NCBI GenBank assembly: GCA_965112735.1
Contig: OZ218950.1
Location: 4,588,001-4,652,000 of the forward strand
Source: Phaeosaccion multiseriatum
Taxonomy: Eukaryota > Protista > Ochrophyta, other classes
Reading direction: 5' to 3'
DNA: 64,000 nt
Shown here: one piece after another, positions 8,009 to 64,000 of the stretch
How positions within the stretch are numbered: position 1 is the stretch's first letter
How the letters are laid out: the number at the start of each line of letters is the position of its first letter
Position numbers and translations under genes: made by a program
Notes under the pieces: generated by a model
What the model saw: only the letters and a program-made list of their open reading frames with translations
Databases searched by the model: none
What the model was told of the DNA's origin: nothing

Positions 8009-11000
8009 ATGGCGGACTCCTCCACTGGAGCTACCGCTGCACCTGGTGGAGTCGCCGCCACACCTGAAGTTGCAGTGACAGCTGCACCTGAAGTAGGAGC
8101 GCCAGCGACAACAGAGGGGACAGTACCAGCAGGGGAGAAGAAAAGTGCCCTGGCCCAGCAGTCTTCAGGGGCAGCATACACGGAGCGGATACGCAAGGCT
8201 AACAAGCCCGTCGTGGCAGATGATCAAGCCAAGCTTTGCCTGGCCAACGTCTTTGGTCTGGATCCCATTGTCAGCCTGCATCGCCTCGCGTCCTACGACG
8301 ATGTGAACTTCAAGGTTGTCGTGTCGGCTGCAGTGGCTGTGGCAGCAACAGCAGCTGCATCAACCGTCGCTGCGGCCCATGCATCGGCCACCGCAGCCGC
8401 AGCCGCAGCCGGGGCAAGCGGGAAGGAGGCAGCAGTACTGGCAGCAGACGCGGCATCTGCGGTCAGTGCAGCAGCAGCGGCGAGCGCAGCAGCAGCAAGT
8501 GCAGCCGCGGCGGCAAGAAGTGGGGCGCCTGGTGTGGTCCCCCCGGAGGTGGCGTACACGCTAAAGATCCACAACGGCTGCGAGAGCGACAACCCCGCGT
8601 TTCTGGAGGCTCAGAACGGCGTGGCGCTGCACGTGCTGGCCAAGGGCTTGCTCACGCCCGTGCCGCTGGCCGCCAAGGATGGGAAGCTCCTCTCCAGCTT
8701 CCCTTTGCAGACTGTGTCGGGACCGCGAAGGTGGGGCGAGTGTGTGCGGGAAAGGAGGGGGAGGGGGTGGAGGGGAGGGAAGAATCCTTTCCAGGATGGG
8801 GTGTGGACGTAGGCGTGCTTTGCCCCAGAAAAGGGAGGACATTCTTCTCACCCCCATCCCTCCTTTAACCCCATCTGTGCCTCTCCTCAAGTCTTGCTGT
8901 CCGGCTACTGTCGTGGGTGCAAGGACCTGTCATGAGCGAGCCGGGCCTGCCCCTCACCGTGGGCACTCTCCAGCACGCAGGGGCTTACCTTGCCAGCCTC
9001 GATGCCGCCACACAGGACTTTGACCACCCCGCCTTATACAGGGACCACCAATGGGACTTGAGGAGCTTCCCCACGCTGCAGGTACAAGTGATAAGGGTGG
9101 GGGGGGGAGGGGGAGTAACAAAAGACGCGTGAAAGTGTATGAATGTGTGGTGTGTGTGTGTGGTGTGTGTGTGGTGTGTGTGTGTGGGTGGGTGGATGGT
9201 TCCTTTTGTTCTTGTCTTGCTCTCTTCGGAGTCTGCCTACTTTAAAACCCCTTTTTTTGCATACGCACAGGCCAATTTGGCCCCCTCTTTGTGTATCAAG
9301 TGCACATACACTCTCTTGTGACGAGGTCCCCCATGCATACACCTTTGACTCTGTTACGTCACCGCCACAACCGGTCTCTCTTCCCTCCTCTCCTTGACTC
9401 TACTCTGCCTTACTCTGTTCTGCGGTGCTGCGCTCTGGTGTGCTCTGCATCTCGTTCTTCTTCTCTGCTCTGCTCTGACTTGCGTTGCTCTCTTTCCCTC
9501 TCCTCTGCTGCGCCACGTGCTTGTCCACCGCCGCCTGACTCTGGCTGGCTCTGACTACCTCTGGCTCTGCTTTGGCTCTGCCTGGGCTGGGCTGGCAGGA
9601 GTTCGTGCCGTGCCTGCCCGATCCCCAGCAGAGGGATGTGGTGCAGTCCGTCATAGACGCCTTCTACAAAGACGTCCTGCCATGCGTACAGCACTTCAGC
9701 TGCAGCGTCATACACGTGAGTGAGTGCGTGGGGAGAGGAGAGGACCGATAAAGGAACACTCTCCATCTCTCTCTATCGAAAACTCTCTCGATTTCTGCTC
9801 TCAGTCCACCGCTCTATCTATCTATCCTCATCTCTCCTATCATTATCCTATCTACCTTCTCCTTCTTGACTCATGCACTCTCTCACACACACACACACAC
9901 ACACTCACGCATTCGCCCTCACGCACGTACTCAACGTACGCACGGGGCACAGGGCGACTACAACGACGGAAACATTGTGCTGACGCCGGACTGCAGCCTC
10001 GTAAGGGGGGTGCTCGACTTTGGCGACTGTGTCAAGACGTGGACCATCAACAGCCTTGCCATCGCCATGGCCTATGCGATGTGCACCACCTTGGCCACCA
10101 AGGAGGGAGGAGATCCTCTGCAGGCAGCGGCGGTGAGCGAGAGGAGGGGGCGGAGGGGAGGGGGGAGGTGGGAGGGGGGGGGCGGGGGTTGGAGAGAAGA
10201 GCAAAGGAAGGGCGGACAGAATTTCGCAACTCTGCTCTGCTGCCGATTCACCAACTTCTGTATCACTAACTGCTACAGGCCGTGCTCCGCGGATATGTGG
10301 ACGTGACCATCGTGCCCCCCCTGGAGAGCCGCTACCTGCGCACTCTAGTGGCTGCCCGCCTTGCCATGAGCCTCACCCTCGGAGCCTACTCGCACCAGCA
10401 GGTACTCATCACTAGTTCACCTCACTCACTCACTCCCCTACTCACCTCACTCCCTCACTCACTCACTCACTCACTCCCCCACTCACCTCACTCACTCACC
10501 TCACTCACTCACTCACTCGCACACTCACTCACTCCCCCACTCACTCCCCCACTCACTCCCCCACTCACTCCCCCACTCACTCACTCGCTCACTCACTCAC
10601 TCCCCCACTCACTCGCTCACTCACTCACCCACTCACCTCACTCAGACTCTCACCTGACGTCACTCCCTCACCCCCCTCCCGCACTTGCTGACCTCGCCCC
10701 ACCCATCAGGACCCGACCAACGACTACCTGCTGGTGCACTCCAGGCCGGCGTGGCTGGCGCTGGACCTGCTGTGGAGGCGAGTGCCAGATGTGCACACCA
10801 AGGTGCGTGACGCTACCTATAGTTGCTCGTCCAATTCCACCCCTCGTCTGACGCTCTGCTCCGCCTCTCTCTCTCCCTCTCTCCCCTTCCTCTCTGCCTC
10901 CTTCCCTCTCTCCCTTCCCCACCCCCCCCCTTCTCTCTCTTTCTCTCGCTCTCTGTCTCCCTTCCCACACCCCGAAGGCGCTGTTTGAGAAGGCCATAAT

Positions 11001-42938: not shown

Positions 42939-43258
42939 CCGACACATCAATAGATTTTTTAGAGCGGAACGGCAAACTGGCGCATTTTTATACCGTCGAC
43001 CGCCGGCCCGGAAAAGGGAGAAGAAAAAGAAATTTGGAATTTTTTGGCAAAGGCGGGAAGAGCAAAATCGCCGACGAGGCAGGCAATCGGAGGGCAGGGG
43101 CGGAGGGCAGAGGGGCGGGCGGGGAGAGGGGCAGGTCAGGAAAGAGGAGAAGACAAAGGCATAGATGGCGATGGCGGGAACAAGGAGGCGAGCAGAGGTT
43201 AGGACAGGAAGGCGCGCGAGTGCAAGCAACCGCAACGAAGTTATCTCCGCCCACTCAC

Positions 43259-44845
43259 CTACAACGATTGTTGTACAGTCACAGCCCGGCAGGGCTGAGC
43301 CCGGGAGGGCTGAGCCCTGCAGGGCTGACTGCTTCCCCGGCTTGACGCCCCAGCTGTTGTTGATTCGTTGCCCGCCCGAGCACATGATGATGAGTGAGGA
43401 CAAGTAAGCAAGCCAGGGAAACTCAGGGGCTGTTTCTTGTTCAGGCAGCAAGCAAGCAAGTAGGCAACACCAATGGCTGGACAGGCAGATGAGCGAGACG
43501 CAGGCAGGGGCGCAATCAGCAACTTACTGGGAAGATGTTGTGGGTGGCGTGGCCTTGGAGTTGGCCATGCCTTTGAGAAGTCGTACAGCCCGAACAGAGT
43601 GATTGTTCGGGCCGCACAAGGGTCGCGCAACAGCGTGGCCTTGCATGTGGGGCAAGTCCACACCTTCTTGGCCCCCACGCACTCGTTGAATGCACCACAG
43701 GCGGTGCATGTCTTGGTGGTGAAGGCCTCGCTGGGCTCAAGCAGCACTAGTGAGCAGGAGGGAGAGGCGATGGCCTGAGCGAGAGGAGTTCGGGCAGCCA
43801 AAGAAGGAAGTCAATGAGAGGAATTGTTAGCTCAGCCACACGAGGGTTGCTGATGGGGACGGAGGTGTCTCAGTCTCAGCGACACCAGCCAGCCAGCCAG
43901 CCCAACACCAAGCCAACAACAAGCAACAGACGCACACACGCACCGTCTTGAGCCGTTGGCGGAATAGACCCATGGAGAGGGCGTCCATGTCCCTCCCCAT
44001 ATCCCTCGGCAGCCCCGAGATCTGGCGGCCCCGCCGGCTGGACCATGCCTGGGCTCGGACAGGAGGCAACACAAAGTGCGTGAAGTTCGCCACGATGAGC
44101 CGTATGGCTATCGTGTGGAGGACGAGCGTCTTGTGGTGCAAGAGCGCCCGCATCTTGGCCGCCTCCAGGCGAAGAGCCCGCGTGTCCTGTCCACTCTGTG
44201 CGCGGGCGGAGGGAGGGAGGGAGGGATTAGAAAGTGACATCAGCCACGACAAGAGACTTGGGCGAGGCACGCATCCTCCTCACCTGCGCTGCCTGCCACA
44301 CCTGGCTCTCCAGCTTCGCTATCCTCCTCTGCAGCGGCCGCATGGAGGCGGAGAAGCCGTGACCCACCCTGAAGAAGCGCCCAGTGTGGGCACACCAGAT
44401 GGACAGGAACGTCCGCACTCCGGGGTCGGCCCCTCCCCATCTTTGCTCGGGGGTTAGCTTTCCAAGATACTCCCTGACCTCGCGCCGGAACTCTGCCGTC
44501 TGCCCCTCCAGGGGATTCAGCACATCCACGTACTTGGTGTTGGCGTGGAGGCCAGAGCGCTGAGGAAGGTCCTCCACACGGAGACCGCGCCACTTTCTGT
44601 CCTGGCCATGCTCTCCTGCCATGTCTCGGTCCAGCTTCCTGATCTTGGCGTCCACGTCCGACAGCTCCTTCTTCTTCTTGCGGCGGCTCCGCCATTCCTT
44701 GACCTGATGTCGGCCAAGAGGGGAAACAAGCCACAAGCCAAAGGAGTTCTTTGAGATGACAAGGTGTCAAGGTACTACTGCTGCTGCTGCTCCTGCTGCT
44801 GCTACTACTGCTGCTACTACTGTTGCTGCTCTGCAGCTATTCCTG

Positions 44846-47943: not shown

Positions 47944-50900
47944 GGCTCCTTGGCCCTCCCTTGAGCATCAAAAACCTCCCCCTGGATGGTGGTGTCCTCT
48001 CGGTGTTGTAGCATCCCATTGTCCAGGAGGAAGCGAGGAACGCACGCGACCAGATCCTTCAGCAAAGCCATGTCGTTGAAGGCACTCTGTGCCACCCCTC
48101 GACTCGCAGCTCCTCCCCTCAGCACACTCAACAGCGCTGGCTGCTGCTGGACAATCACAGATATTGTACTTCTGCTCTTCTTCTCCTTCGCCTTTCCACC
48201 TGTCTTCCTCTTTGCTGCCGCTTCCTTCTTCCTCTTTGCTGCTGCAGCAGCTGCCGCTTCCTCCTTCCTCTTGTTCTCCTCGGCCATCCGCATAGGGGCA
48301 AGCCGAGCGTTTCGCAACACTGTGGCGCCGGCCTCACCATCATCATCCCCTGTCGGGAGGAAACTATACATGTTGGAGCGGAATTGCTGCATCACCCGCC
48401 GATTCTGCTGCGCCGCCCTCTCGCGCCTTCGTAGCTTGTTCTTCTGCCTGTCCTCCCTCACTTGCGTTGATGCCATAATGGCATCATTCCGCTCCACACC
48501 AGCCCCCGAGACACGGTCGCTAGGGAAGGGCACATTCAACTTGAGGCGCTGGCCGTAGTGCTTCCATTTCTCGGGCTTCTCCGCCGTCAGGACGACCGGC
48601 TTGAAGCCCGAGACTTCGGCACCATCGCGACACAGGGGCATCGACTCCTTCGCCCAGGCACGGGCACACACGTCTGGAATGTGCATCCCCTCCCGAAGAG
48701 CCAACACGTCTTTCCCAACAGCCAACATGGACACCTTCCCTTTGCCCTCCTTGCAGTCCTCGCGAGCCGCGCAAGCCCGACGATGCGCCGCGAGCTGCAT
48801 AGGTCTCCTAGTCTGGCGCAAATAACGCCATGGGTCGGCGGCAAGCTTGAGGAGGAGGCACCGAAGCAGCAGGTCTTGCTTGTCTCCCTCCGCCGTCGGC
48901 TCCACCAGGACAATAAGAGTGGTGTTATGCCACGTTCGCCAGTGACCTTGACCCCCCGCGAAAGTGGCTAACACGTTCTTGTTCTCGAGCACCACCTTGA
49001 CCCTCCTCAAGCGCGGAAGCAGGTTGGAGCAGAAGAGGCTATCCTCTTTGACCTGACCATGCCAAGCGAGAAGAAGGTTGAAGAAAAGGTAAGGGGTGGA
49101 TTCTGCATCGGCTCCGTCGTGTCTGCCTGCCTGCCCATATGCCTGCCTGCCTGCCCATATGCCTGCCCATATGCCTGCCTGCCTGCCTGCCTGCCTCCCT
49201 CTCTGCCTGCCCATATGCCTCTCTGCCTGCCTGCCCATATGCCTGCCCATATGCCTGCCCATATGCCTGCCTGCCTGCCTGCCTGCCCATATGCCCCTGT
49301 TCCAGCCGTGCCCTTCGCTCAAATCAAATGCTCACCTCAAGGCCAGCGTCCGTGAGGATGCTCCTCCCCTCCCCCAGGACAGGGCGGGAGTCGCCAACGA
49401 AGATGACGCTGCAGTTCAGGCGTCCTTGTCTCGTCCGCTCTGCCAGTAGCCGGGCACAACCGATGCAGGGGAGGGTCGAGATGACCAGTATGAGCTCATC
49501 CTCACCAGTCCACCCGTGCCGCTTCTCAATGCACTCGAGTAGCTCCGGCTCGGCATGAGCACCTACAGTGACTCCGTGCAAACAGCTGGACACATCAGCT
49601 CTGGCCGGTCCACTCCGTCTTGCCACAAGCCACTCCTCTCTGGTGACGTTGTAGGCCCCCGCTGCTATGGCACTGTGGTTCTGCCCCGGTTCCTTCGCCT
49701 TCACAGCCTCAGAATACACACGCCTGGACAGATCCACCACACCGTCCTTCCACGGAACCTTCTCATCCAGCACCGTCGGACGCAGTTCCCGCCCCCCGCC
49801 CTCCTCCTGCTGCTGCTCCTGCTGCTGCTGCTGCTGCTGCTCCTGCTCCTGCTCCTGCTGCTGCTGCTGCTCCTGCTGCTGCTCAGGCGCGGACACGTCA
49901 GGCCTCGAAAGCAGCGTCGGCCCCCCGCGCTTCTTGCTCTTGTTCTTCTCTCTCTGCTGCTGCTGCTGCTGCTGCGGCGGCTCCTGCTGCTGCTGCTGCT
50001 GCGGCTGCTGCTCCTGAGGCGGGGGTAGGTCGGCCGCACACCAGGCATCCACAGCGCTGTTGGGCACCACGAGCACCTCGAACAGCAGATTGTTGTGCCT
50101 GCCTCTCATAAGGGCAATGCACTTGCGCTTGTCTGTATCCACCCCCCCGCCCAGGCCCTCCCAGAGGGCGTCGGCCATCTCCTTGCCCTACTCCTCACCG
50201 AGCATGGTGAACGACTCGACTCGATCGTTGCCCCCAGGTGCCTCAAAATCAGAGAGAGTCACACACTTTCCGTCGTCTCCAGTCTCCATCTCGCCGACCA
50301 GGACAATTCGTAGCCTCACTTCTGCCGCCTTGGTCGATCGGCACTCCGGAATAAGGAGCATGCCGCTCCCCTGGCCCAGAAACTCAGAGTGTTGGTGAGC
50401 AAACTTCTTGACCTTGTGGTACAGAGGGGTCAAGAGCACAGACAGGCAACGCTGGTCTACCTCCAGCCGGGCATAGGTCTGACGCACATCATGTGGCCGT
50501 GTCGTCGTCGCTCGCGTTCTCGCCTTGGCTCGACTGCGCTTCCTCGGCCTTGTCGAGAACGCGCCGGGGAAGAAAGGACTAAGCGCCTTTATAGCTGACC
50601 GAACGCCAGCCTTTTGCCCCTCAGCCTTCTCTGCGGCCCTCTATGACAAGAAGATACGACAAGAAGACAATAGGAGCGGAGAGGGAGGCGGCCAAAGGGT
50701 GAGCGAGGGGGTGCTTGGCATGTTGGAATCCGGAATGTAATTGTCAGGTGGGGGGAAAGTAGCATTCACAATTTTCTTACCTCCTCTTTCGCACGAGCCT
50801 TCCGCTTCTCCTCTGCTTCGCGCGCCTTGCGCCAAGCCTTGACGGCATCAGAGTCCTCCCCCCCCTTGTCCCCCAACCAACTCTTGAAGCAGTCCGCCTT

Positions 50901-51491
50901 CCAGGTCCTGCTTTGTGTGGGGCTCTTGTTGAGTTTTCTTTTGTTTTCGGCCTCCTTTATCCTCGTCCTCCCCTCCGGCGATCGGTCGAAGAGTGTGCGA
51001 AGCGAGATGGTCTGGCCTGCGCCTTGACCGTTCTTGGCCTGCAACAGAGAGAGGGAGAGAGGGGAGAGGATAAAATCTCAGTGGGAAAAGGCGTGGAACC
51101 GTGAGAGTATCGATGAATTCCTCACCTTTCCTTTCGCATTGGTGGGGGCCTTCTTCCCTTTCCCTCGCCCCGCAGACCCCGTCGCTGCCTTTGCCGGGCC
51201 CACCTTGCCGTCCCCTCCCCCGGCAGATCCCTTCACTCTGCTTTTTGCTGGGGCCTCCTTGCCCTTCGTCCCGGCCCGCCCTCCTGCTGATGCGCCCTGT
51301 GCCCGCCCCGCCGTCCTTGGTGCGTTTCGATTGGAACGGCCCTGTCCCCCCCGCACCTTGCGTCCTTTTCGCCTACGGCCCTGCTCCTCCCACTCCTCCT
51401 CCTCCTCCTCCTCCTCCTCCTTCTCCTCCTCCTCCTCCCACTCCTCCTCCTCCTCCCCACCCCAAACACCGTTTTCCCCCTCTACCTCCAT
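43259..51491 (-). CDS. Giant (~2,250 aa) deaminase - Fanzor2 (TnpB-like RuvC) fusion protein, 10-exon model
   Basis: Exons 51491-51126, 51038-50781, 50640-50199, 50132-49336, 49052-46932, 46862-45329, 44957-44908, 44703-44284, 44195-43944 and 43774-43259. All introns are GT..AG and phase-compatible. Confidence 0.62.
43282..43327. repeat. Three tandem 15-bp palindromic units AGCCC(NNNN)GGGCTG
   Basis: agcccggcagggctg / agcccgggagggctg / agccctgcagggctg, downstream of the RuvC-III. Confidence 0.85.
43550..44703 (-). other. Fanzor2 / IS607-TnpB-type RuvC nuclease domain + zinc finger (3 exons)
   Basis: RuvC-I GADPGVRTFLSIW (Asp 44425-44427). Bridge-helix region LHTIAIRLIVANFTHFVLPP..MDALSMGLFRQRLK. 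Shifted RuvC-II SEAFTTKTC (Glu 43727-43729). CTACG..VWTCPTC zinc finger. RuvC-III LRDPCAARTI (Asp 43622-43624). Confidence 0.92.
49336..49720 (-). other. Zn-dependent cytidine/adenosine deaminase domain (CDA fold; TadA/RibD/dCMP-deaminase-like)
   Basis: HAE (49549-49557), LILVISTLPCIGC (PCIGC 49456-49470) and GRSILTDAGLE|V terminal motif. Confidence 0.85.
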
Positions 51492-51708
51492 GGCTTGGGG
51501 GCGTCCATAAGCAGGCCCACTCCCTCCCTGTGACAGTCGGGGGGGGGGGGGGGGGGCTGTGTGCGTGAGATAAAAGGGAGGGCAGAAATGAGAGAGGGAG
51601 AGAGAGAGAGAGAGAGGACAGAACGAGAGGAGAGAGAGGAAAGAGAAGAGATAGAACAGAGGAGAGAGGATAGAACGAAAGCAGTTACAAAGCTGGGAAA
51701 AGGGTCCA

Positions 51709-51845
51709 ATCTGAGTTAGTTGGGAGGCAAATCTGATGTAAGTGGGGGGGCAAAACTGAGTTAGCCTCCGCTTTTGTCATGGCCTCATCCGAAGGTGGCA
51801 AAACTGAGTTAGGACTGAGTTATCCTGAGTTAGGACTGAGTTAGG
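51709..51845. repeat. Cluster of CTGAGTTAG motifs (about 6-7 copies; GGCAAAACTGAGTTAG twice)
   Basis: Read directly; lies just inside the right inverted repeat. Confidence 0.85.
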
Positions 51846-51867
51846 GGCGTTTGGTGATACACAAAAA

Positions 51868-54800
51868 TCACAGGTCGTCGCGTTCCGCTTTGAAAAATGT
51901 TCTTGAACATGCGACATTTGAAGCTCTCACCTTCTTGCTGCCCTGCTGACCCCTGCCTTTCTTGCACTCTTCGTCGCAAGGGGCTGCCCCATACTGCTCA
52001 GAGGAGCTACCAATGCCGCTGGACGAAGCCTTGCGCTTCCTTGCCCTCGTGGATCGGCTGGCGGGCCCCTGTTGTTGGGGAGAGCGAGAAGGGCGGTCAA
52101 AGTAAGAACAAAAAAAAAATAACCAAGCAATGGGCGTGGCAGGGACGGGGGGAAAGAAACAGAAGCAAGCTTGCGTGCCTCGTCTTTACTCCTCCTCACC
52201 TTCGGACTCCACGTCGCCGTAGTACCCCCCTCCTCCTCCTCCCCAATGTCAGACTCCTCGTCAGGCCCACCTCTTCCTCCGCCTCCGCCTCCGCCTCCTC
52301 CTCCTCCTGCTCCTCCTCCTCCTCCTCCTCCTCCTCCTCCTCCTCCTCGGGCTCTCTTCCTGGGGCGTGGGGGTGGGGTCACTGACCTCCTCCCAGAAGC
52401 TCGCCCACCTCTTCCTCCTCCCCCCCCCGCCCCCTCCTCCTCCTCCTCCTCCCCCTCCTCCTCCTCCTCCTCCTCCTCCTCCTCCTCCTCCTCCTCGTCC
52501 TTCTCCCCACCACCACCACCACCACCACCACCACCACCCCGTCCTCCTCCTCCTCCTCCGGCAAATGTCGTCGCTGTCCTCACCCCCTCCTCATCCCCAT
52601 CCTCCTCCTCCTCCTCCTCCTCCTCCTCCTCATCCTCCTCCTCCTCCTCCTCAGAGAGAGAGTGGAGACAGAGAGAGGGGAGGAAGAAGGAGAGAAAGAA
52701 AGGGGAGAGAGGCAGATGGAGGGAGGGATGGAGGGATGGAGGGATGGAGGGATGGAGGGATGGATGGAGGGAGGGAGGGAGGGAGAAAGAGATGGAGAGA
52801 GAGGGAGAGCGAGAGAGAGCGCCTCGTTAGGATCAAAAAAAAAATGTGCGCATGCCTCCACTCCTGCCCAGCCTCTCCGATCCTCCTTACCTTCCACGCC
52901 GCTATCCTGTCCTCGTCATCGTCTCCTCCTCCTCCTCCTCCTCCTCCTGCTCCCCCTCCTGCTCCCCCTCCTGCTCCCCCTCCTCCTCCCCCTCCTCCTC
53001 TTCCTCCTCCTCCTCCTCCTCCTCCTCCTCCTCCTCCTCCTGCTCCCCCTCCTGCTCCTCCTCCTCCTCCTCCCCCTCCTCCTCTTCCTCCTCCTCCTCC
53101 TCCTGCTCCCCCTCCTCCTCTTCCTCCTCCTCTTCCCCTTCCTCTTCCTCTTCCTCCTCCTCCCCCCCCTCCTGCTCCCCCTCCTGCTCCCCCCCCTCCC
53201 CCTGCTGCTGCTGCTGCTGCCCCTCCTGCTGCTGCTGCTGCTGCTGCTCCTCCACTACGCATCGAAGCCTCCGCTGGGAGGATCCACTCCCTCAGCTGAG
53301 GAGGAGGAGGAGGAGGACGGTATCCATTGAATCCCCCCCCTCCTCCTCCCCCTCCTCTTCGGGGTCTCTTGGTTGTCGCTGACCTCATCCCATACACTCG
53401 TCGTTCACCATCACCGCCATCACCATCACCACCACCACCACCACCACCACCACCACCACCACCACCACCACCACCACCACCACCACCATCACCGCCATCA
53501 CTATCGACCTCCATAGGTAGCGGACCCAAAGCTCCCTCTTGTTCTGCCACCGGCTGTAGGCCGATAAAATGATGCGAGTAAAAGCCGATACAGCAGGATC
53601 TTGCCTCGTCCAGCTCGCCTTCTGGTCGTCCGTCATAAACAAGTTCGTCTTCGGGGATGCGTGGGCGTGCTTTTTCCAGACTCTCATAGACGGTGACCAA
53701 GGTGACCTTGATGGCAAAGTATTCGCAAAGCCAACGAATTTCATTCTCCCCAAGGTACTCTCCGTAAGTGCCGAGGGTGACAGGGTCAGGCTGTGGCTCA
53801 CCCGGCTTGTGATCGCGCTGATCCCCAGCGCTGCTGAGATACGCATGAGCCAGCTGCTGGCGCCACACAGACATGACTGGCTTGCCCTTGTCATCGAGCG
53901 GGATAGGCCTAGAAGGTCTATCGCTGTCCGGAAGATGCTGAAGGCACTGCTGCCAAAGGGCCCACAAGAAGCAATTTCCCTCCTTGGCAGTGGCCACGTA
54001 TCGGTGGGATGGGAAGATCCTCGCCCAGTGGACAGCATCCACAGCATTCAGTTCTTGCTTGTCCTGGGGAGGGAGAAAGAAAAAAAAAAAAAAAAAAAAA
54101 GGAAAAAAAAAAAAGACAGGCAGGCAGAAAGGGGGGGGGGAGAGGTGGTGTGAGAAGAGAGAGATGTGGAGAGAGGAGAGAAAATTAAGAGAAAAGAAAT
54201 CAAATTTAAAAAGACTGACTCACCGCGAGAGAAGCCTCCTCCTGTGTCTCCTGCTCTGCCCTCCTTCTCCTGCGCGCCTTCCCACCCCCCAGCATGGGGC
54301 CCTGGAAGACTCTGGTGGCCGCGCTGATGATGCTGTTTGGGCGCCGAATGCTGGTGTAATGGTTGCCATCGAAGGCCAGCCACAAAATGTCCTCCTCGGA
54401 GCTGGTCTCCTCTCTCGCCCTCTCCAGAGAGAAGTAATCGGTGGGCATCATGTATGATCCTGTATCCCCACCGGGATAAAGGACCACGCACCTCACACCC
54501 GTCGCTGCTTCCCAAAGGCGAAGGAAGAGACGCCCACCCTTTCGGTTGGGCTTCTCCACCTCGCAGATGAAGGCCTCCACACAGCCAGCACCGACGACGG
54601 TCTCCATCTCACGGCGCCTCTGGGGCAGACTGGCCCGCAGTTGCCGACAGGCCTCGGCCCTCACCTCCCTCGCCGATAGCCCTCGGCAGCGCTCTGGGCC
54701 CAGCACAGCGGCCATGACACACGCCTGGCTCTCCTTCTTCCCCTTCCCCTTCCTCCTCCTCCTCCTCCTCCTCCTCGTCCTCCTCCTCCTCCCCTTCCTC

Positions 54801-56356
54801 CTCCTCCCCTTCCTCCTCCTCCCCTTCCTTCCCTTCCCCCCCCTCCCCCTCCTCCTCTTCCTCTTCCTCCTCCGTCCCCCATCCCCCTCTCCCTCATCGT
54901 CACAAGGGTCGTCCTGTTGCACGTCCTGGCACTGGCCGCTGGTCGTGGCCGTGACCCCTTGCTCCCGTGTCGTGGAAACGCCCCCCCTCAGAAAAGGCGG
55001 CTGGAGGCAGCGAAGCAGCGGGCGGCAGTGGAGTGGAGGGGTATACAGTAGGGTTCAGCTTCCGGATACAATGAGATGGGTATTTAATGAGCCCTCACTC
55101 CTGGCTGGTTTTCGCAGTGACTTTCAACAACCCACTTTCACATCCCCCCCCCCCCTCCCCCCCCACGCACGCACACACACACTTTCGTACTCACCACCGC
55201 CAAGAGCCGTAGGCAGAGGTTAGCAAGCGCGGTGTACCAGGAACACCATCCACCTCCAGCTGCTAGTATGTAGAGTGGAGTGCGCCGGAACAATGGTGGG
55301 ATTGTGGTAAGCAGTGCCAGTAAGTTGGGAAAGGAGGAGACCCGTTGTGCCCGTTTCTTGTTCTCTCGCTCTTCCCGTCGCCTCCTTCTCTCCCGGCCAT
55401 CCCGCCTCCGCCTCTTCACACCCCGGGGCCGTCGCCGGCTCTCATTGGCGTCCCGGCACTGGCCCTGGCCCTCACCCGGCGGCTGATGGCCAGACGAGCT
55501 GCTGGCCCCTGTTGGTTGTTGTTGCTGCCGTCCAATCATGGAGTGGAGCAGCCAGACGGCCAACCCTCCGCAGCCCCACCAAGAAGGGCAAGAGACTAAC
55601 AGTGAAAAGTCTGGTGTGGCCCACAGCCACCACAGGAGAACGGTTTCTAAGAAACCCGTCACGCCCGCCCACCAACACCGCTCTTGCTGCTGCTCCGGCT
55701 CCTTCTTCTCCATCCTCCTCGGCAGGCATCGCTGCTGACGTCGCCACGTCCAGCGCCTTCTCTTGTGCGGAGGAGGAGCTTCTGTCTCAAAGCCGCTGCT
55801 GCTGTCGCTGCTGCTGGTGCTGGTGCTGGTGCTGCTACTGCTGCTACTGCTGCCGCCACCACCCGGCGAACCGCGCCGCTCCTGCTCCGCTTCCTGCTGC
55901 TGCTGCTGCTGCTGCTGCTCTTCTCTAGTACTGCGGGCGATGGCCAGGTCGAGGCGCCGGAGAATAACGTCAACGAGCCTCTGGGGGGGCTGTCGTCCCA
56001 CCCAGAGGCTTCTAAACAGGTGTGGGTCGTTCTGCTGGAGGCGCTTGATCTCCTCGTTGAGGAGACGACGAGTGGTGCTCTTGGCGTGATTGTCCACACG
56101 CCGGGCGTCTCTGTACGCACAACTGCCCACGACAGCACGGAGTAGCTCACGCCGCCGGGAGGATGCTTTGACCTCCTTGACCTCCTTTCTCCTCTTTTCT
56201 GCCAGGTCATTTTCCCTGGCTTGCCTCTTCTTCCTTTGAAATTGCTGTTCCTCCTCCAGCCTCTCCGCCTCCTCCTCTTCTGTCCTCTGTCTCCTCCTCC
56301 TCCTTCTTGCTCGTCTGTTCTTCTTCTTCCTCCTAGAAGTACGCTCCGTTGCCTCG
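51868..56356 (-). CDS. Tandem OTU-like cysteine protease protein with N-terminal hydrophobic segments (multi-exon; 5' end unresolved)
   Basis: Exons 56356-55195, 55000-54224, 54063-52891, 52649-52200 and 52068-51931 (or read-through to TGA at 51868). OTU1: QACVMAAV..EVRAEAC..KGGRLFL..WLAFDGNHYTSI. OTU2: KEGNCFLWAL..WRQQLA..EYLGENEIRWL..IGFYSHHFIGL. Confidence 0.68.
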
Positions 56357-63994: not shown

Positions 63995-64000
63995 AGGTCG

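Follow-up and report, generated by a model that had tools for sequence, protein, structure and literature searches.

Fanzors are the eukaryotic homologues of TnpB (Bao & Jurka 2013, PMC3627910; Saito et al. 2023, PMC10432273; Yoon et al. 2023, PMC10711439). Term searches of PMC3627910, PMC10432273 and PMC10711439 brought up no protease or deaminase fused to a Fanzor, and the Fanzors and TnpBs described in the literature searched are stand-alone nucleases. In that literature no paper was found to combine Fanzor with OTU in the sense considered here, and the combination of Fanzor with deaminase returned only engineered editors or fusions. The analysis presented here concerns a stretch of 64,000 nucleotides from Phaeosaccion multiseriatum (GenBank assembly GCA_965112735.1, contig OZ218950.1, positions 4,588,001 to 4,652,000), hereafter referred to as the window, in which the minus strand of a repeated element carries protease-like exons upstream of a deaminase-like exon and a Fanzor module. 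Protease domains are familiar cargo of selfish elements: OTU domains occur in Helitron/Helentron elements and, in N-terminal position, in giant viral polyproteins such as nairovirus L, and Ulp1/C48 protease domains are carried by transposons such as plant Mutator-like elements.

The locus shares with Fanzors a zinc ribbon of the Cas12f/TnpB type (TNB) scoring above the Pfam cut-off, RuvC-like motifs, spliceosomal introns and the placement of the nuclease module at the 3' end of a transposon, here ~280 nt from the element terminus. It differs from them in that a deaminase-like exon and two protease-like exons precede the nuclease, apparently joined to it via phase-0 introns, and the reading frame proposed here is, to our knowledge, several times longer than those of Fanzors. 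Laboratory base editors, in which a deaminase is combined with Cas9, Cas12 or a TnpB-type protein, show the same order of deaminase and then RNA-guided nuclease in one polypeptide, whereas the arrangement predicted at this locus would be natural and transposon-borne, with an apparently intact nuclease triad and extra protease-like modules. As with the OTU proteases of selfish elements (Helitron/Helentron, viral polyproteins), a small Cys-His protease-like domain would stand ahead of the other domains in a very large predicted protein, with a (D/E)GNC loop followed by a putative hydrophobic helix, and a late His motif, but the element has no Rep/helicase or polymerase partner. The likeness to Ulp1/C48-carrying transposons lies in the C48-like motif order of an exon present in two sister copies (B and D), but this exon has no Pfam C48 match, PDB relative or usable fold and is missing in the window copy. 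From the sequence comparisons described below, we consider it probable that an in-frame splice joins the protease-like exons to the deaminase-Fanzor part as one coding sequence. The window copy (copy A) is a 21-kb DNA transposon with a minus-strand exon chain and phase-0 introns, in which two OTU-like exons are followed by a Gly/acidic linker, a basic connector, the MEVEG exon, the deaminase-like exon and the Fanzor module. A stretch of 403 nt (51930-51528) would be a spliceosomal intron, the removal of which joins the connector to the MEVEG exon in frame, and the joined coding sequence would span ~3,500 residues or more, with its start upstream of 56356.

Splice signals at the junction in the window

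On the minus strand of the window, AAG ends at 51931 and the donor GTGAGAGC begins at 51930 (AAG/GTGAGA, the slash marking the splice site; read from the sequence and recomputed). The acceptor CGACTGTCACAG (...GTCACAG) ends at 51528, and GGAGGGAGT begins at 51527 (CACAG/GGA). Both sites are in phase 0, i.e. between codons, and lie exactly where an earlier note on this DNA had placed them; the long pyrimidine tract that it reported before the acceptor is also present, as a long CT-rich tract and an 18-C run. The observation of in-frame compatible splice signals in the window is thus confirmed. Between the acceptor and the in-frame ATG at 51491 (MEVEG) there are 12 open, coding-like codons. The length of the proposed intron leaves a remainder of 1 when divided by three, and since 403 nt is not a multiple of three, only splicing joins the connector and MEVEG frames. 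Read-through past the donor, which the earlier note had named as the alternative, adds 20 codons and then meets the expected TGA at 51870-51868. The chance of a single GT/AG pair being frame-compatible is approximately 1 in 3; hence, the window alone proves little, and the weight of the argument comes from the paralogues.

The junction in paralogous copies

The genome searched comprises 67 Mb in 22 contigs with ~60% GC, the window being located on contig 1. A search with the region revealed that the window locus belongs to a repeated unit of more than 21 kb. The copies compared were A (the window), B (contig 5), C (contig 7) and D (contig 1, 300 kb from A), together with a diverged paralogue, E (contig 6), and the related elements F (L006, contig 4), H (L008, contig 5) and G (contig 6). 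The protease-like and Fanzor parts are linked at five loci, copies A to D (91-97% identity) and the diverged E, and the protease-like part adjoins the deaminase-Fanzor part in A to D.

The donor can be followed into F and H, where the connector exon recurs at ~70% identity. Its acceptor (CAACAG) and donor (...GSKK/GTGAGAG) lie at the same positions as in A, the net exon length differs from that of A by a multiple of 3, and similarity to A stops 9 nt past the donor GT. The acceptor of the deaminase exon (TTAACAG) is found 159 nt (F) or 166 nt (H) after the connector donor, and the exon that it opens contains no Met for more than 100 codons, yet is conserved at the protein level with copy C. In H, the connector and deaminase exons are in different frames, so that only phase-0 splicing links them. 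The read-through tails past the connector donor, which extend for 20 codons in A, 35 in F and 124 in H, are unrelated. The acceptor, in turn, can be followed into paralogue E, the OTU2-like exon of which is only ~45% identical to that of A at the protein level. This exon ends ...HHATFK/GTGCGT, its frame would run into a stop after 4 codons if left unspliced, and an acceptor, CCACAG/GGAGGAAGTGGG, follows after 101 nt. The E acceptor (CCACAG/GGAGGAAGTGGGCC...) falls at the same base as 51528/51527; beyond it, E encodes GGSGPASGPQPMDVED and A encodes GGSGPAYGRPQAMEVEG, and upstream of the ATG the two differ in length by a single codon. Splice sites at the same base in diverged paralogues, with similarity decaying inside the intron, were therefore found for the donor in F and H and for the acceptor in E and D.

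Other copies connect the two parts in different ways. A single open exon without Met, which ends ...GPAGRGKGK/GTGAGC, connects the upstream gene's acidic tail (...GVRTATTFAGGGGG) with the 3' part of the MEVEG exon both in copy C and in B over its second half (B2); in copy C, therefore, the upstream and Fanzor "genes" are one exon. C, B2, F, H and G lack an ATG at or near the start of the exon that corresponds to the MEVEG exon, and translation in them must consequently enter from upstream. The ten junctions located across seven copies are all in phase 0, with donors beginning GTGAG or GTGCG and acceptors ending in YAG, and their intron lengths leave remainders of 1, 2, 0, 2, 0, 2, 2, 0, 1 and 1 when divided by three. 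What the earlier note put forward, namely that the upstream gene joins the deaminase-Fanzor part in frame, is thus supported by sites that are conserved on both sides, are in phase 0 and bridge coding exons in the paralogues. In paralogue E, ~6 kb of micro- and minisatellite (CA/TG, WQWMAVDGSG-type; G000:C6:2543700-2549500) lies between the protease-like exons and the Fanzor-like open reading frames (ORFs), and the deaminase motif was not seen in this paralogue.

Between donor and acceptor, copies B and D harbor a 2.3-kb segment with a ~400-codon Ulp1/C48-like ORF, in which the order of motifs (H..L..ID, then E/D, then Q....DC) corresponds to the His-Asp-Gln-Cys layout of C48. In copy D this ORF ends QQPASQ/GTGAGG and the same acceptor follows in frame 110 nt on, and in copy G it is to the deaminase exon that this donor leads, across 145 nt and with a change of frame. 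The Ulp1-like exon returned no Pfam match, to C48 or otherwise, and no PDB sequence match; its AlphaFold model, based on a three-sequence alignment, had a predicted local distance difference test score (pLDDT) of 49 and yielded meaningless Foldseek matches. Compared to B and D, copy A lacks ~2 kb of the Ulp1 segment, with both breakpoints in CT microsatellite. The proposed 403-nt intron is hence what remains of the two introns that flank the Ulp1/C48-like exon in B and D, composed of the 5' part of one and the 3' part of the next. Two further rearrangements were observed in these copies. In copy B (L009:8457-9384), the Ulp1-like ORF leads, in frame, to an additional OTU2 tail, which then continues as in C into the Fanzor part, the additional tail identifying B as a recombinant with a partial internal duplication. 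Copy D contains three extra tandem copies of a ~400-bp unit (L014:9422-10000 into L015; D 9422-10694, window equivalent 51109-50710); the unit starts just after the MEVEG donor, and five copies stand in a row.

Several observations weigh against the use of this splice in copy A. With its strong GCCATGG context and its conservation in A, D and E, the ATG at 51491 could serve as an independent start. A competing AG at 51558/51557, 29 nt upstream of the acceptor, would set the exon start at 51556, out of frame, and TGTAA at 51689-51685, within the proposed intron, could be a poly(A) signal if the organism uses that motif. The connector exon is near-neutral, with a pN/pS of 0.7-0.9 over ~40 codons. 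Word searches of protein collections with the MEVEG exon and a paralogue deaminase exon found no transcript-derived protein, and an OTU2 profile run with HMMER against 1.84 billion proteins revealed no transcript-derived protein crossing any junction. Finally, the donor/acceptor junction is the most rearranged stretch of the element and is arranged differently in each of the four copies A to D, so that copy A may be a recent deletion product never tested by selection. Part of this evidence could be accommodated by two separate genes residing in one transposon, an upstream gene ending at the TGA at 51870-51868, with poly(A) in 51.65-51.87 kb, and a deaminase-Fanzor gene that starts at the ATG at 51491 and is driven by a separate promoter within or close to the repeat-rich 51.5-51.9 kb. 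We regard this arrangement as unlikely. The context and conservation of the ATG, the TGTAA motif and the failure of HMMER and word searches of protein collections to find a transcript joining the parts would agree with it, and the dispersed-repeat fragment between the parts (TAACTCAG arrays) could carry regulatory signals. Set against this, the region upstream of the ATG is conserved as coding, with a one-codon indel, up to the same-base acceptor in E, five of the copies listed above (C, B2, F, H and G) have no ATG with which to start the equivalent exon, the read-through tail is not conserved in paralogues, and TGTAA is absent from copy D.

The rearranged state of the junction could also mean that copy A is a silent relic, that is, an unexpressed recent deletion derivative of a B/D-like element, in which the compatible sites are inherited leftovers. 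The 2-kb deletion between CT tracts that distinguishes A from B and D would be explained in this manner, as would the different arrangement of the junction in each of the four copies and the failure to find expressed sequence in the protein collections, and the genome does contain many fragments and 2.2-kb non-autonomous derivatives of the family. We nevertheless hold this explanation to be quite improbable, since every exon examined in copy A is open, the module exons show a ratio of nonsynonymous to synonymous substitution rates (dN/dS) below 1, and copies A and B are 96-97% identical, which indicates recent activity. An in-frame stop at 46922-46920 was considered as a nonsense mutation and rejected, because it lies in the intron that follows CTG/GTGAGT.

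Module identity and exon order

If the two parts are indeed fused through the 403-nt intron, the product would end in the module that is most readily identified. The last exon (43262-43810) matches PF07282 with 30.8 bits, above the cut-off of 26.3, and its paralogues with 30.3 and 34.8 bits; the RuvC-like motifs GADPGV, EPSEAFTTKTC and RDPCAARTI were read by eye. The predicted Fanzor/TnpB identity of the C-terminal module can thus be considered solid. The putative identity of the deaminase is borderline: the window exon matches PF00383 with E=0.0027 and 18 bits, below the cut-off of 25, and the deaminase exon of F (L006) with 24.8 bits against the same cut-off. The HAE...PCxxC motif is present in the deaminase exons of all copies examined, and eight such deaminase-like loci occur in the genome.

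Domain and protein searches of the upstream part were made exon by exon. The OTU1-like exon presents a Cys motif (QACVMAAVLG) and a His motif (GNHYTSI), and the OTU2-like exon a Cys loop (EGNCFLWAL) and a His motif (SHHF); copies A, C and E all retain the OTU2 motifs, as EGNC/DGDC/DGNC and H(H/N)H(F/Y). The language-model (ESM) neighbors of OTU1 belong to PF02338 clusters (0.89/0.88/0.87), and OTU2 scores 0.92, with 20 of 30 matches in PF02338 clusters; the nearest language-model neighbors of the OTU-like exons are giant-virus OTU clusters. The OTU-like exons have dN/dS values of 0.3-0.45 (OTU1 ~0.3-0.4 against copies C and E), and a low-confidence AlphaFold model of OTU2 places Cys24 at the start of a helix and His158 within a strand. 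Pfam gave no match for any of the upstream exon ORFs in A, C or E, and PF02338 did not match the OTU1 or OTU2 exons of these copies even at E<=10; a genome-wide PF02338 scan at the same threshold detected several other loci and none of the OTU1/OTU2 exons. For OTU2, a word search and a PDB sequence search found nothing, the HMMER search of 1.84 billion proteins gave no relative and one spurious tandem-repeat match, and the AlphaFold model, again from a three-sequence alignment, had a pLDDT of 51 and meaningless Foldseek matches. Against a canonical OTU from the same genome, the OTU2 Cys loop can be aligned across no more than 9 columns, with a probability of 24%. The naming of these exons as OTU proteases in the earlier note is hence favored by the catalytic-loop motifs and the language-model neighbors but not by Pfam PF02338, HMMER or the fold search, and the OTU label suggested by the motifs is best treated as a lead only, and a weak one. 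A tandem duplication of the two domains is not supported, given that hhalign detects no similarity between OTU1 and OTU2. Between copies A and B on the one hand and C and D on the other, OTU2 (54063-53400) shares only ~46% identity at the protein level, whereas the flanking DNA is 91-93% identical, which suggests that a diverged lineage supplied this exon, by replacement or gene conversion.

The coordinates of the exons and of the other features are compiled in Table 1. The first recognizable exon opens at an acceptor, TAG/C (56357/56356), in phase 2, which follows a CT tract and has a counterpart of the same phase in paralogue E. No ATG is found near the start of this exon, and the true start of the gene must therefore be further upstream. 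The earlier note had let the gene start at 56356 and had proposed a polyprotein of ~3,500 aa; the in-frame join, for which the paralogues argue, and a size of ~3,500 residues or more can be retained, and the start at 56356, the first base after an acceptor, cannot. Upstream, conserved blocks at 56722-56592 and 57197-57118 may be further exons. GGA/GAG-rich coding low-complexity sequence at 53253-52910 and 45315-44990 matches hundreds of satellite-like loci in the genome, and similarity searches are inflated as a consequence.

Table 1. Exons, proposed intron and terminal repeats of the element in the window (copy A), and the Ulp1-like exon of other copies. Coordinates are window positions unless stated; slashes mark splice sites.
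Feature	Coordinates	Strand	Description
5' terminal inverted repeat	63996..64000 in window; full 63996-64018 (C1:4651996-4652018)	-	18 nt beyond window end
First recognizable exon of upstream part	55170..56356	-	basic/coiled-coil, then hydrophobic stretch; 3' limit ~55170 approximate
OTU1-like exon	54224..55000	-	candidate acceptor CCAG/CCG, donor GCG/GTGAGT, both phase 0
OTU2-like exon	52891..54063	-	acceptor CCCCAG/GAC, donor AAG/GTAAGG; Gly/Ala-rich tail
Acidic/Gly-rich exon	52200..52649	-	acceptor is first AG after 240-nt pyrimidine tract; donor AAG/GTGAGG 52200/52199
Connector ("NLS", RARKRK) exon, 46 codons	51931..52068	-	acceptor CAACAG/GGG, donor AAG/GTGAGA
Proposed intron	51528..51930	-	403 nt; dispersed-repeat fragment 51922-51591 (TAACTCAG arrays), CT microsatellite, TGTAA, competing AG
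MEVEG exon	51126..51527	-	internal rather than first; donor AAG/GTGAGG 51126/51125
Exon after MEVEG exon	from 51038	-	next in copy A chain
Deaminase-like exon	49324..50178	-	HAE...PCxxC motif
Last Fanzor/TnpB exon	43262..43810	-	zinc ribbon CTACG...CPTC, RuvC-III RDPCAARTI
3' terminal inverted repeat	42979..43001	-	A, C and D all end at 42979, flanks differ
Ulp1-like exon	copy D L014:7287-8456; copy B L044; also G000:C1:5771024-5771698		motifs AHFYLGVID, LLETL, QIFLSQDCHVMVL

The transposon and the meaning of a possible fused protein

Copy A is an element of 21,040 bp (window 42979-64018) bounded by 23-bp terminal inverted repeats (TIRs), and its 5' end is shared, according to alignment, by A, G and a partial copy. 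The two ends form an imperfect inverted repeat in which 20 of the 23 positions match (consensus GGCGCAY TTTTATA SY GTCGACC). A degenerate pattern of this TIR matched the genome 27 times, versus 0 for the reversed control, and inverted pairs were located at 21.0 kb (A), 15.4 kb (F), 14.1 kb (G) and 2.2 kb (several non-autonomous elements, on contigs 14 and 7). A target-site duplication was not evident at A, C or D, and no transposase was recognized, the shared 5' module ORFs having no Pfam match. This 5' module (window 63711-61300, minus strand) is ~95% identical to that of the 14-15-kb deaminase-Fanzor elements and of the 2.2-kb copies, and comprises an ATG-initiated ORF (MEENEEAVAG..., ATG at ~63711, ~300 nt inside the 5' end) that could be either exon 1 of the giant gene or a transposase. 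A single TIR pair encloses the upstream and the Fanzor parts alike, so that the repeat at 51898 does not mark an element boundary. The conflict seen in the earlier note, in which an inverted-repeat boundary would have been located inside the intron, is thereby removed, the ends of the element being the TIRs at 42979 and 64018. The TAACTCAG arrays at ~51.7-51.9 kb are a fragment of a dispersed repeat that also occurs alone on contigs 9 and 12. Two other boundaries were evaluated and discarded. A TIR pair at 51922/42979 was rejected in favor of the 42979/64018 pair, as no inverted repeat links its two positions. The similarity break at 51922 was rejected as a transposon end because it is where the similarity to F and H ceases, 9 nt past the conserved donor, and because the repeat continues upstream of it in copy D and on contig 9.

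Every junction of the family falls between codons, and front modules can therefore be lost, swapped or fused without breaking the frame. Our best guess is that the protease-like modules are cargo effector or processing domains that are delivered with the RNA-guided nuclease protein or cleave it. Self-processing by the OTU-like domains, or deubiquitination of chromatin, might be envisaged as a purely speculative role. A broader proposal, which we put forward tentatively and consider somewhat doubtful, is that a single giant protein of modular build is encoded by the entire 21-kb element. Exons that both start and finish between codons would attach interchangeable front cassettes to a constant Fanzor, forming a natural mix-and-match platform for RNA-guided effectors that a transposon disseminates; the cassettes would be the two OTU-like exons in A, the Ulp1-like exon in sister copies and the deaminase everywhere.

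Should the splice go unused, the locus would still be an example of two selfish genes travelling together. If the fusion is real, an RNA-guided nuclease would be naturally fused to other enzymes, namely to a deaminase and to protease-like domains, through phase-0 introns, which permit the exchange, loss or gain of modules, and such genes would ride in an active family of TIR transposons. The finding would thus bear on the question of whether eukaryotes possess natural RNA-guided proteins that resemble base editors or deliver effectors.

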